A stretch of DNA of 64,000 nt from Hyaloraphidium curvatum SAG 235-1 (GCA_025558095.1 JAIVFI010000044.1:191022-255021); one strand, 5' to 3'. Positions 42,487 to 46,896 are shown, numbered from the stretch's first letter. Made by a program: numbers and translations. The notes: a model not told the origin generated them from the sequence alone.

Positions 42487-43556
42487 ATGGCGGACCTCGC
42501 CGCGGCCGAGGCGCGCATTGATCTCAAGGTGCGTCGCGTCACAGCGCCCCGCCGCCCCCGCCGCCCCGGCTGGCCGCCCCGCCGTGCGCCGCATTGCGCT
42601 TGCGCGGCCGCGTGGACACCGCCGGCGGCGGTCGCGGGCCCCGCCACTCCCCCCGGCTGACGTCCCCCGGACCTTCTCCCGTCGTCCCCCATTTTCAGGT
42701 GCTGCATCACATTGGCAACGACGGTGCGTGGGGCCGCGCTGAGGGTCGGGGGGCTTTGGCTGACGACGCCACCGGGTTCCAGCGGCCGCCAAGGGCAAGG
42801 ATGCCCGCAAGCAGGACCGTTTCCGCCGCACGGTCCTGGCCGTCGACCAGATCGTCAACCAGAAGCTGTACAAGAGCAAGTCGAGCTCCCTCGAGCAGTA
42901 CTTTCGCGACGTTTGGAAGATCTCGCGCGCCCAGGTCTACCGTTTCATCGACTCGGCGTGCGTGCTGAAGGTGCGTCACACGGTGCCCCCCACCCGGCGT
43001 GCACACGCGCTGACGGTTTCGCGCCTCCTCTCCCGCATCTCGCGTGTCCATCCGCCGGATTCTTCCTACGTGCATCCCCCTGCCGCCCCGCAACGGCGTT
43101 CGATCCATCCGCCCCATTTTTCGTTCTGTGCCCTGAATCTGTCTCCCCCCCGCGTCTCCCCCACGCACGATCTCCCGGGAGCAGCAACTCCAGGGCTTCC
43201 CGCACCTCCCCGCGCGCGAGCGGATCTGCCGCACCCTGCGCAAGCTCACGAAATCGCGCACCGACATCCGCAAGCTCTGGGCGACGGTGCTGGAGCGCAA
43301 CGCGGCCTCGGCCGACCTCGAGCAGGCCATCACCTCGACTTCGGTCGCGGACGTGTGGAACGAGCTCTCTGCAAAGGGGCTCGTCGGGTACGGCGGCGAG
43401 GATGACAACGAGGAGCTGCCCGAGATCGAGCTGAGCGACCACTCTTCGGACGCCGAGGGAGGCCCCGGACCGCCGGCCGTGTCCGTGCCCGGGCCCGTCG
43501 TCAAATCCTCCGCACCGCGGACGCAGCGGGGACCTAGGCAGAGCTACGTCGAGGAC

Positions 43557-43588
<32 letters not shown>

Positions 43589-44960
43589 AGAAGAGGACGA
43601 GGACGAGGACGACGACGGGAGCAGCCTCTCCGCGGACCGCCGCTGGGGCGCGCGTCCGCCCAAGGCCCGCGGCCGGGGCGGCGGCACCAAGACGCGCCCG
43701 CGCGCGGCTGCCAAGCCCAAGAAGGTCGCGCAACCAAGGGGCGGCCGGGGCGGAGGCGCACGCATGCCGGGCCCCGCGGACTATGGCATGCAGCCGCAGC
43801 AGCTCCCCGGCGGCCGATCGCGCGCCATGCACGCAGTCGCCGCGGCCAGGCAGGCCACCAACATTCTCGAGAACATCTCGCCTTCGTCCGGCGACCAGCG
43901 GAGCAAGCGCCGCCGGACCTCGTTGGACAACCCCACCTCCACCATATCCGCCATCTCGGGCCTCTCGCGGCTGGCCGAGTCGGGCTACGGCACCGGCATG
44001 TACGACGCCCCGGGGGAGCGCTACGCCCGCGCCTACACCGGCGGCGGCGCCCCGCGCGAGGACTACGGTTACTACCCCGCGCCGCAGCCGCAGTACCCGC
44101 ACGACGCCGGCCGCTTCCGCGGCGCCGACCCCGCCGCCGATCCGGGGGGCCACGGCTATGCACCCGCTCCCCGCTCGGACGAGCCCACGCCGCGCTGGCG
44201 CTGGGTGAACGAGGACGACGAAGGGGACGACGTGCTTCTCCCCTGGCAGGACGACGGCATCGAGACCAATAACCACGAGCTTTCGAGCAACGACGTCGTC
44301 CTGTGCACGCACCTGCTCGAGTCGTTCGCCCGGCGCGGGTACCTGCTGCAGCCCTACGTCAACGGCGCCTGGGCCGAGGGCGTGTCGCACTGGCGCCTCG
44401 CCCCGCGCCGCGACCTGGTGCACAGGCCGCTGCAGAACAAGCGCCGCAACCCGGTGCTGCTCACGTACCCGCCCCAGGGCGCCGGGCCCCGCGCCCCGCA
44501 GCAGGCCATGGAGGGCGTGCAGGGCTTCCCGCCCCAGCCCGCGAGCGCCCAGCCCCCGTTCGGCAGCCCGCAGCCCCCCGCAGGCTACGGCAGCCCCGCC
44601 TTCCACGAAGCGCAGCAGTCGTTCCACGACCCGCCCGCGCACGCGTTCGACAACCAGCCGCGCACGCAGGCCGAGCAGCCCGCGGAGCGGTGGGAGGGCG
44701 GCGGCGAAAAGTTCCTGCACCCGCAGCGCATGCTCTCGCCCTTCGAGCACGGCGAGGAGCCCAGGTTCCACGATGCGCCCATGGATGCCGCGAGCCCGCC
44801 GTCGGGGATGCTGGGCATGTTCTCCGGCAACGGGGCTCAGGCGGGGTCGCACGAGGGGATCTTTGCGGCCATGGGCGGGGGCCAGCTTGAGCACGATTTC
44901 GGGGGATCCTACGGCGCGGCGGTCAAGCCGCCCGATTCGCCGGCGCCGGGCCAGAAGTGA
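42487..44960 (+). CDS. Putative DNA-binding protein: N-terminal phage/bacterial-like HTH-type domain, acidic tract, basic/RGG region, small Trp-rich domain, Q/P-rich tail
   Basis: Exons at about 42487-42528, 42699-42723, 42783-42970 and 43185-44960 give MADLAAAEARID..DRFRRTVLAVDQIVNQKLYKSKSSSLEQYFRDVWKISRAQVYRFIDSACVLKQLQGFPHLPARERICRTL..RKLWATVLE..ITSTSV; NLS-like KRRR. Confidence 0.8.
43551..43617 (+). repeat. (GAG/GAA/GAC)n coding acidic tract
   Basis: Encodes EDEEEEEEEEEEEEEDEDEDDD. Confidence 0.9.
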
Positions 44961-45240: not shown

Positions 45241-46896
45241 TCAGACGTCCAAAAAGCTCATCGGATCCTCCTCGTCCTCCGTTTTCGGTGCCACGCCGTG
45301 GGTAAGAAAGAGGTCCGGGTGATCCTGCAACAGTTTCAGGAGCACAGCCTGGTCTTCTTCGGTCCCGCCGAAGTCGTGCTGCTGCAGGTACTGGTCAAGG
45401 TCCATGTTCCCGCCGTCCAAGTCGACCCCGAGCGCCGATTGGACGTTGGCCAGCGAGTGCTCCAGGTTCTCAATGTCCTTGGACAGCGCATCCGCGCTCC
45501 CCTTGGTCAGATCGATGTTGGACGCCATTTTGGAGAGGTTGCCGATGGCTTCCGTCGGAGGGGGTGCGACGAGCGAGGCCAGAGGGAGGTTGAAGAGGGC
45601 GGCGGTCGACTGCGGTATCACCGCGTCGGAAGCCGGCCCGGGGGGAGTGCTGGGTCCGCCGTTGATGGTTTCCGTCGGTTCGGGAGATGCAGCGCCCTTC
45701 TTCTTGCCCTTGGCGGCAGACGGGGGTTTGGCCTCGGAGATCTTGCGGGCGGCGGGAGCGGAAGCGCCGGCGCTCGAGGTGGACGAGCTCGAGCCAGCGG
45801 GTGAAGGGGCGTTGAAGGGCAGAATGATGGGACCTTGCCGCGCGGCTGCAAGTTGAAGCAGTTTAGAGTCGTGAGGAAGACGCCCCTTCCAAGAGCACCC
45901 ACAATGCACGTGCTGCTCAGGTTCCGGCCTCAGCTGCAGAATCTCCTCGATCCCGTTGGCTGCGTTCTCGTCATCCTCGTCGTCGTCGTCGTCCGTCAGC
46001 GCCACGCCCGTGACCAGCTTCCGCCGCTTCCCCTGTCCCAGGCCAGTCTTCGACTGGAACACAGAGGCCAGGAACTGGATGATCTTCTCGATGAGCTCCT
46101 GCTGCTTCTGGTACTGCGCCCGCAGGCTCTCCGTTTCCGCCCACATCTCCTGGTTCGCCTTCTGCATCGTCTGGAGGTCGTTCTGGATCGCAAACTGGTG
46201 CCGTTTGATGCCGGCCATCTCCTGGATCAGCGTCGACAGTTCGAGCGACGAGCCGGGCGACAAGGCCTGCGGATTGTCCTCCTCCTTCCCCTTTTTGCGC
46301 GTGACGAGCGAGAGCAGCTCGGGCTGGTCCCGGAGGAAGTGCGGGTGGGCAAACTCTGTCGCCAGCTCGGCCTCCTGGGGAGGGAGCAGGGCGCCGGCCT
46401 GCAGGTGCGGAACTTTGTGGAAGCCGTACATGTTGAGCTGGCGGACAAAGGAGGAGAAGTTCGAGTGCTTGAAGAAGCGGGGGAGGATCTCGTGGGCAAA
46501 CTCGTCCGGGTTCTCGACTGCGGCCGGGGTCAGAGGGGGGCGGGGCCACGATAGCCGCGCTTCCTACCGATGAACGAGTTTCCCTCTTCGCTCCAGTGGA
46601 TCAGGTTGTCCGAGTTGGGGTCGTTGACCATGCTGCGGAGATTCGGCCCGGTGTCAGAGGAGCCGCGCGGGGGTTCGCAACCCGGCCCACTTGAAGAGCT
46701 TGGAGAGAAACTGCGGCACATTCTTTCCCGCCATCGGCCCCGGGGCGATGAGCCGCGGCGGCAGCTGGGCGAGCGGGGCGGCAGCGACAGACTCGAGAGA
46801 GAAGTCCACGGGCGAGTTCAGCGCACCCGCGCCCGCCGCGGCGCGCCGTGTGCCGACGCCCCCGCGGCTCTCCGAAGAGCGGGTCACGCGCTCCAT
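45241..46896 (-). CDS. HSF1: Heat shock transcription factor
   Basis: VPQFLSKLF/MVNDP..IHWSEEGNSFI/..FAHEILPRFFKHSNFSSFVRQLNMYGFHKV; EFAHPHFLRDQPELL; HR-A/B heptads ending KIIQFLASVF. Confidence 0.93.

Follow-up and report, generated by a model that had tools for sequence, protein, structure and literature searches.

The window, a stretch of 64,000 nt from the genome of Hyaloraphidium curvatum, a monoblepharid/chytrid-grade fungus, carries a four-exon gene that is real and expressed, and whose model we count as shown (Table 1). An initial annotation had put this gene together as a chain of four exons, one of them only 25 nt long, and the DNA reads as described, with both comparative and contig support. 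All three introns are of the GT..AG type, and all three have the donor gtgcgt. A 670-nt Logan contig from the public run X1, the type of which was guessed as RNA, aligns with 0 mismatches and skips 42723|42783 as well as 42970|43185 exactly; because this gene is single-copy in the genome, the contig was read as a spliced transcript. A check of the junctions against RNA was thus successful for introns 2 and 3, including the 3' junction of the micro-exon, while intron 1 lies outside the coverage of this contig, which ends at the exon-2 acceptor.

Support for intron 1 comes from comparison instead. Logan assemblies of two related fungi (L001 and L002) contain the same start codon, the same exon 1 donor, and the same four-exon layout including the 25-nt exon, with exons that are conserved and introns that have diverged in length and sequence. 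In a paralogue of H. curvatum (L004, G000:C1:598601-599147), the equivalents of exons 1-3 are contiguous in one frame and only the intron-3 position is shared, which is also common to L001 and L002. Moreover, the annotated orthologues P0009, P0011, P0007, and P0013 read ...RIDLKVLHH... unbroken across the exon 1/exon 2 junction. At the level of sequence comparison, intron 1 is therefore supported by the layout of L001/L002, by the paralogue, and by the read-through orthologues. The Logan gene calls for the two relatives (P0001 in L001 and P0002 in L002) open with residues that are intronic or out of frame and lack exons 1-3 altogether, so that the helix-turn-helix (HTH) is invisible in these predicted proteins; it is the 25-nt exon that causes gene callers to miss the domain.

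Run X1 also contains a 4344-nt contig that extends from 43773 to beyond 45200, where the adjacent HSF-type ORF has its first bases, and a single transcript is not claimable from a contig. Positions 43544-43772, which include a skipped repeat at 43544-43624 (codons of the acidic run), are covered by none of the contig pieces of this run. The convergent neighbour, a gene for a heat-shock-factor-type DNA-binding protein (PF00447), is found downstream on the opposite strand at L001 and L002 as well, indicating conserved synteny.

Behind the N-terminal domain, the acidic run, the basic RGG region, the KRRR motif, and the Q/P-rich tail were found where the initial annotation had seen them. In addition, exon 4 encodes a second conserved domain rich in Trp, which recurs in 47 of the 158 family proteins examined, including those of Gonapodya, Allomyces, Catenaria, and Spizellomyces (Blastocladiomycota are thus included), and which is absent from the phage and bacterial ORFs described below. 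The rest of exon 4 with the Trp-rich domain gave no Pfam or PDB sequence match, and an ESM Atlas language-model feature search returned no usable match for the Trp-rich domain.

Table 1. Features of the gene and its neighbour (positions in the window)
Feature	Position	Strand	Remarks
Exon 1	42487..42528	+	14 codons from the start codon on, MADLAAAEARIDLK; encodes the domain's first short helix
Intron 1	42529..42698	+	170 nt, GT..AG; comparison only; spliced contig stops at 42697
Exon 2 (micro-exon)	42699..42723	+	25 nt: VLHHIGND and the first base of the following codon
Intron 2	42724..42782	+	59 nt, GT..AG; skipped exactly by the run X1 contig
Exon 3	42783..42970	+	62 whole codons, includes KISRAQVYRFIDSA
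Helices in exon 3	42783..42970	+	long helix FRRTVLAVDQIVNQKLYK, then helix-turn-helix core SLEQYFRDVWKISRAQVYRFIDSACVLK
Intron 3	42971..43184	+	214 nt, GT..AG, phase 0; skipped exactly by the spliced contig
Exon 4	43185..44960	+	591 aa plus stop
Exon 4 start	43185..43400	+	last three helices of the domain: LPARERICRTL, IRKLWATVLE, ITSTSVADVW
Rest of exon 4 to stop	43401..44960	+	acidic, basic, KRRR, Trp-rich and Q/P-rich parts
Acidic run	~43551-43616	+
Basic RGG/K-rich region	~43638-43763	+
KRRR motif (NLS-like)	43905-43916	+
Second conserved Trp-rich domain	~44190-44470	+	RWRW...RGYLLQP..G.W...HWRLAP
Q/P-rich tail	within 43401..44960	+
HSF-type gene (neighbour)	45241-46431	-	convergent

A domain family in zoosporic fungi

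The N-terminal domain starts at residue 1 of the protein, spans ~140 aa, and defines a large family. The exons of the window gene were searched one by one, and a paralogue (P0004) and an orthologue (P0009) stood in for the whole domain. A search of 1.84 billion representatives with a profile from alignment A1, in which an uninterrupted paralogue and the exon pieces form separate rows, matched 1484 proteins at E<=1e-3, of which 203 also passed E<=1e-10. The 30 matches that were looked up by name, all from among the best 150 of the 1484, belong to zoosporic fungi without exception. Members occur in Chytridiomycota (Spizellomyces, Polychytrium, Quaeritorhiza, Blyttiomyces, Nowakowskiella, Rhizophlyctis, Cladochytrium, Dinochytrium, and Chytridiales sp.), Monoblepharomycota (Gonapodya), Neocallimastigomycota (Piromyces), and Blastocladiomycota (Allomyces, Blastocladiella, Catenaria, and Paraphysoderma). 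Other eukaryotes may be present among the 1334 matches beyond the best 150, and much of this tail is probably prokaryotic, because with the A1 profile at a database size of 1.84e9, 28 of the 180 phage and bacterial ORFs introduced below pass E<=1e-3 and none of them passes 1e-10.

Four loci with the domain exist in the H. curvatum genome, as a search with exon 3 gave the 100% self match and three paralogous places. Besides L004, these are an intron-free paralogue (L005, G000:C3:1009421-1009825), which encodes 602 aa and is identical to the NCBI hypothetical protein DFJ74DRAFT_654356 (H. curvatum, Monoblepharomycota), and a third place at G000:C24:367405-367761. The orthologue of Spizellomyces punctatus is SPPG_02829. 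Two tandem copies of the domain are carried by P0005, an unnamed representative of 218 aa, as judged from two matched stretches in the A1 profile search.

Despite more than 150 cluster representatives, this family is without a Pfam model and without annotation. No Pfam domain was detected in any of the 78 fungal full-length members at E<=1e-4, and searches of the fungal domain against Pfam, PHROGs, and PDB sequences stayed blank or sub-threshold, the PDB sequence search yielding nothing for the domain with either a single sequence or a profile. Single exons gave nothing usable against Pfam and PHROGs, and a weak match of one exon to SAMD1_WH (E 0.06) was dismissed. Matches to DUF3791 in 14 of the 87 members (best E 2e-4) and to HTH_7 in 7 of the 87 remained below threshold and were read as generic HTH signals. 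In a word-based protein search, exon 4 returned 3 matches and was swamped by low-complexity words, residues 1-75 returned 2, and the paralogue found only itself. The view that the domain does not belong to a known pan-eukaryotic family is in line with these results, as neither the Pfam search of the 78 members nor the 30 names from the best 150 of 1484 matches led to such a family. Papers that describe a stand-alone fungal family or that name SPPG_02829 were not found in the literature search.

Homology to phage and bacterial proteins, and the predicted fold

In the initial annotation, the spliced N-terminus had been held to be colinear with a widespread uncharacterised phage/cyanobacterial family. 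The central motif written down for that family, AL.EIRD.RLYR, was back-translated and scanned in IMG/VR and in GTDB species genomes, which yielded 78 phage and 102 bacterial loci. As this set was fished with one 12-residue motif, which overlaps the fungal ..KLYK, it samples part of the prokaryotic family. In most of the phage ORFs (140-360 aa), the motif lies 30-50 residues from the ORF start. The bacterial loci include the cyanobacterial genera Brasilonema, Scytonematopsis, Dolichospermum, and Chroococcidiopsis, along with Actinomycetota, Verrucomicrobiota, Planctomycetota, Desulfobacterota, Deinococcus, Chloroflexota, and Acidobacteriota. Aligned with each other, 92 phage and bacterial ORFs give a consensus that is almost letter for letter the motif of the initial annotation, and the family behind it proved to be real, homologous, and colinear with the fungal domain.

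A fungal-only HMM matches all 78 IMG/VR phage ORFs (best 65.9 bits) and 101 of the 102 bacterial ORFs (best 62.2 bits), with alignments that are colinear over HMM positions ~17-138, i.e., about 115-120 residues. One may ask whether this resemblance reflects chance or convergence of short helical HTH segments, or an artefact of motif fishing, given that the ORFs were chosen by a 12-residue motif overlapping ..KLYK, that exon 3 and the domain of the paralogue, searched by tblastn in GenBank phages, returned no match or E values around 3-9, and that PHROG matches are weak, with four fungal members weakly touching phrog_4571. The blank tblastn result can be explained by a family that is too diverged for pairwise search. 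Moreover, scores still reached 48.4 bits after all columns through KLYK had been removed, and 33 ORFs stayed at E<1e-3 (database size 1.84e9), whereas shuffled ORFs attained 3.8 bits at maximum against the same motif-free HMM. In the reverse direction, 112 fungal family proteins passed E<1e-3 with an HMM of 94 phage and bacterial domains (Z 1.84e9), the best of them scoring 68.5 bits, and a prokaryote/phage-only profile scored exon 3 of the window gene alone with 30.5 bits and the start of exon 4 with 17.9 bits. Comparison of A2, the 87-row alignment of the fungal family domain, with the prokaryotic alignment A4 in hhalign gave a probability of 99.5 and an E value of 3.9e-23 over 126 columns at 27% identity, and paired the L..E..I helix of exon 1 with the prokaryotic L..LE..I. 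In addition, language-model and shape searches independently arrived at the same phage and cyanobacterial clusters; in the ESM Atlas feature search, phage and cyanobacterial hypothetical clusters of 125-146 aa came first (0.94). Chance or fishing is refuted by the motif-free control, the reverse profile, and hhalign, and the probability that we leave to it is negligible. From the two-way profile scores, the motif-free control, and the hhalign result, we consider homology of the fungal domain to the phage/bacterial module as established over the whole ~120-130 residues. Profile searches for prokaryotic and phage homologues, which the initial annotation had called for, were thus highly significant in both directions.

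The module is known from the work of Iyer, Zhang and Aravind (2016; PMC4738411), who termed it ParB-type HTH and reported its linkage to Dam in phages, cyanobacteria, chlorophytes, and chytrids. Hence, the domain is not wholly uncharacterised and has already been noted in chytrids, but fused to a Dam methyltransferase (PMC4738411). The novelty lies in a new architecture and a lineage-specific expansion of a known, poorly catalogued domain. Behind the module, the 92 phage and bacterial ORFs carry Dam (10), N6_N4_Mtase (3), MT-A70 (3), DUF5131 (2), or UPF0020 (1), the remaining ORFs being without a Pfam match or cut by the locus end. In PHROGs, the enzyme parts are labelled 'DNA methyltransferase', and the HTH part corresponds to the unannotated phrog_4571, phrog_1733, and phrog_15609; of these, phrog_4571 and phrog_1733 are matched by the HTH part of the prokaryotic module, for which there is no Pfam model. 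The fusion of the same HTH module to DUF5131, a radical-SAM-like phage Gp37/Gp68 family, was seen in phage ORFs at L057:2-853:- and other IMG/VR loci. As it is joined both to DUF5131 and to three different methyltransferase families, it gives the impression of a DNA-targeting head that can be exchanged.

Fungal and prokaryotic versions agree in the N-terminal position and the order of the helices, besides the significant two-way profile and profile-profile similarity, and have in common the positions F, LY(R/K), E.Y, W..SR..(A/V)YR, P..ER..R.L, W..V, and (I/V)T. In contrast to the prokaryotic module proteins, the fungal ones are devoid of a methyltransferase, DUF5131, or any Pfam domain (0/78, and none in exon 4 of the window gene). 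They possess long disordered acidic/basic tails and often the Trp-rich second domain, contain spliceosomal introns within the domain, and form a separate, long-stemmed clade. The fungal domain therefore belongs to the module family, but the architecture of the fungal protein does not.

The fold was modelled on the Nowakowskiella orthologue (P0009:1-150), which stands in for the window protein. An AF2 model based on the A2 alignment has nine helices, with a pLDDT of 95.6 and a pTM of 0.88; an earlier model from a 9-row alignment (pLDDT 55) was set aside as poor. By shape, the nearest ESM Atlas entries (TM 0.63-0.73) are unannotated Uroviricota and Cyanobacteriota clusters and a phage DUF5131 fusion, followed by HTH_ParB/KorB clusters (TM 0.55-0.58). 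Among 48,161 PDB chains, VIA-align retrieved Spo0J (1vz0, Z 6.8, 103 aligned, 3.0 A), ParB-parS (6s6h, Z 6.5), KorB (Z 6.4 and 6.1), P1 ParB (5.1), and SopB (4.9), with the Spo0J/ParB/KorB matches extending over ~100-113 residues, and Z values of 6-8 being middling for this tool and common for helical domains. With Foldseek, no entry of PDB or BFVD reached E<=1e-3, phage proteins and ParB-like entries being at the top of the lists. By themselves, such shape matches are leads.

In shape, the PDB entries closest to the fungal domain come from Raf1 (8ilb, 6kkn, 6smh; Z 8.3 and 7.7 over 116-118 aligned residues of its N-terminal alpha domain), a Rubisco accumulation chaperone and not a DNA binder. 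Identity is only 6-8%, with no sequence signal, and the likeness is probably a shared helical arrangement. In the predicted structure, the fold class is shown to be all-helical, with a probable ParB-type HTH that may resemble the DNA-binding domains of ParB, KorB, and Noc. As modelled, the conserved core SLE.YF...W.ISRAQVYRF.D.A.VL is the helix-turn-helix, and the P.RER.CR.L, R.LW..VL, and ITS helices would complete a ParB-like domain. The HTH that the initial annotation had proposed to look for by structure prediction is thus present in this confident model, with ParB-like HTH proteins as neighbours in shape. With ParB/Spo0J, Noc, KorB, SopB, and VirB (HTH_ParB PF17762, KorB PF08535), the fungal domain may have its general fold in common, in which more helices come after an HTH. 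Nevertheless, canonical ParB has an N-terminal ParB/Srx CTPase domain and a C-terminal dimerisation domain, and the fungal protein is without both (no ParB_N or other Pfam match). HTH_ParB PF17762 is absent among the first 25 families listed for the 87 fungal members (E<=0.1) and for the 92 prokaryotic ORFs (1e-5).

Origin and possible function of the fungal proteins

A quick maximum-likelihood tree was calculated (155 rows, 157 columns, LG+C20, unrooted), which includes a random draw of 70 from the 94 prokaryotic rows and leaves out two short window pieces. The 85 fungal rows fall on one side of a branch with SH-aLRT 100, and fungal monophyly is thus shown among the sampled sequences. Phage and bacterial rows interleave (16-17 label changes). 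The fungal stem is long, at 1.70 changes per site, and the point where it joins the prokaryotic rows has a support of 15. Given its wide range in prokaryotes and its narrow range in eukaryotes, the module is most economically read as having passed once from a phage or bacterium to an early zoosporic fungus, and this is most likely what the sequences reflect, the number of transfers being inferred together with their direction. For the direction, we rely on the distribution and on one long-stemmed fungal clade in an unrooted tree. The suggestion of a prokaryotic or viral origin, made when the gene was first annotated, is supported as likely by the homology, the distribution, and this single clade (SH-aLRT 100 in the unrooted tree).

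Vertical inheritance of an ancient eukaryotic or universal HTH that was lost from most eukaryotes would attribute the likeness to phage and bacterial proteins to deep common descent. The long fungal stem of 1.70 changes per site without an identifiable donor would fit such a history, and the presence of four zoosporic phyla in the family indicates that it is old. However, all named eukaryotic matches (30 of 30, from among the best 150 of 1484) are zoosporic fungi, the prokaryotic side consists of many phyla and phages with interleaved rows, and a consensus identity of 27% over 126 columns together with cross-scores above 60 bits is high for a split dating back to the last universal common ancestor. 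We hold vertical descent to be very improbable.

The module may also have entered as an HTH-Dam fusion that lost its enzyme afterwards. On this account, it arrived as a ParB-HTH-Dam fusion, the stand-alone family came about through later loss of the methyltransferase and duplication, and the protein might be a targeting or reader subunit for adenine methylation rather than a classical transcription factor. Fusions of ParB-type HTH and Dam have been reported in chytrids (PMC4738411), the recognised prokaryotic partners are, except for DUF5131, all methyltransferase domains and mostly DNA adenine ones, and the H. curvatum genome keeps 5-6 MT-A70 loci. Yet a match to Dam (PF05869) was not found in the H. 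curvatum genome, a methyltransferase domain was found in none of the 78 fungal members, chytrid Dam fusions were not among the sequences retrieved for the tree, and the window gene was not seen to be linked to any MT-A70 gene. An origin by fusion first is therefore rather unlikely in our estimate, albeit less so than vertical descent.

The explanation that we favour, and to which we attach good though not overwhelming confidence, is that of a transferred ParB-type HTH module heading a nuclear DNA-binding regulator in zoosporic fungi. Most likely, an early zoosporic-fungal ancestor acquired the module in a single event, the source being a phage or bacterium, and subsequent duplication would have led to four copies in the H. 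curvatum genome. In zoosporic fungi, the module is free of an enzyme and stands at the head of long proteins that are disordered for the most part and contain acidic stretches, basic/RGG stretches, and an NLS-like motif; in the orthogroup of the window gene, the Trp-rich second domain is present as well. DNA would most likely be bound through the putative recognition helix SRAQVYRF, and the tail would recruit partners, making the protein a candidate nuclear DNA-binding regulator. A role in transcription regulation is suggested by the predicted HTH fold in combination with the disordered acidic/basic/NLS tail, and both DNA binding and a nuclear regulatory role of the fungal protein are what we infer from the model.

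Alternatively, the stand-alone HTH proteins could have retained the ancestral task of their phage relatives and guide or read DNA N6-adenine methylation, perhaps as partners that target MT-A70 enzymes to DNA in 6mA-rich fungi, which we regard as an improbable but specific proposal. The only clear relatives of the domain serve as targeting modules in DNA adenine methyltransferases of phages and bacteria. The link to these enzymes provides a concrete hypothesis for the targeting or reading of 6mA in 6mA-rich early fungi. If the proposal is true, the family would represent a missing sequence-specific component of a eukaryotic 6mA system, namely a targeting domain split off a phage methyltransferase.

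Recruitment of a virus-derived DNA-binding domain as a fungal transcription factor is familiar from KilA-N/APSES of SBF/MBF. Most fungi, Dikarya among them, possess KilA-N factors, whose role as regulators has been shown by experiment. The two cases are alike in concept only, each being a DNA-binding module with mainly viral and bacterial relatives that heads known or predicted nuclear regulators of fungi. KilA-N/APSES has an alpha+beta fold, unrelated to the all-alpha HTH of the zoosporic family, which among the named matches is seen only in zoosporic fungi and whose regulator role is predicted. After KilA-N/APSES, the family described here would be a second, independent example of a DNA-binding module from mobile elements heading predicted nuclear proteins of fungi. 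Few lineage-specific regulators of zoosporic fungi have been characterised, and here a whole family with one putative DNA-binding domain comes into view, which is directly testable through SPPG_02829 of Spizellomyces punctatus.
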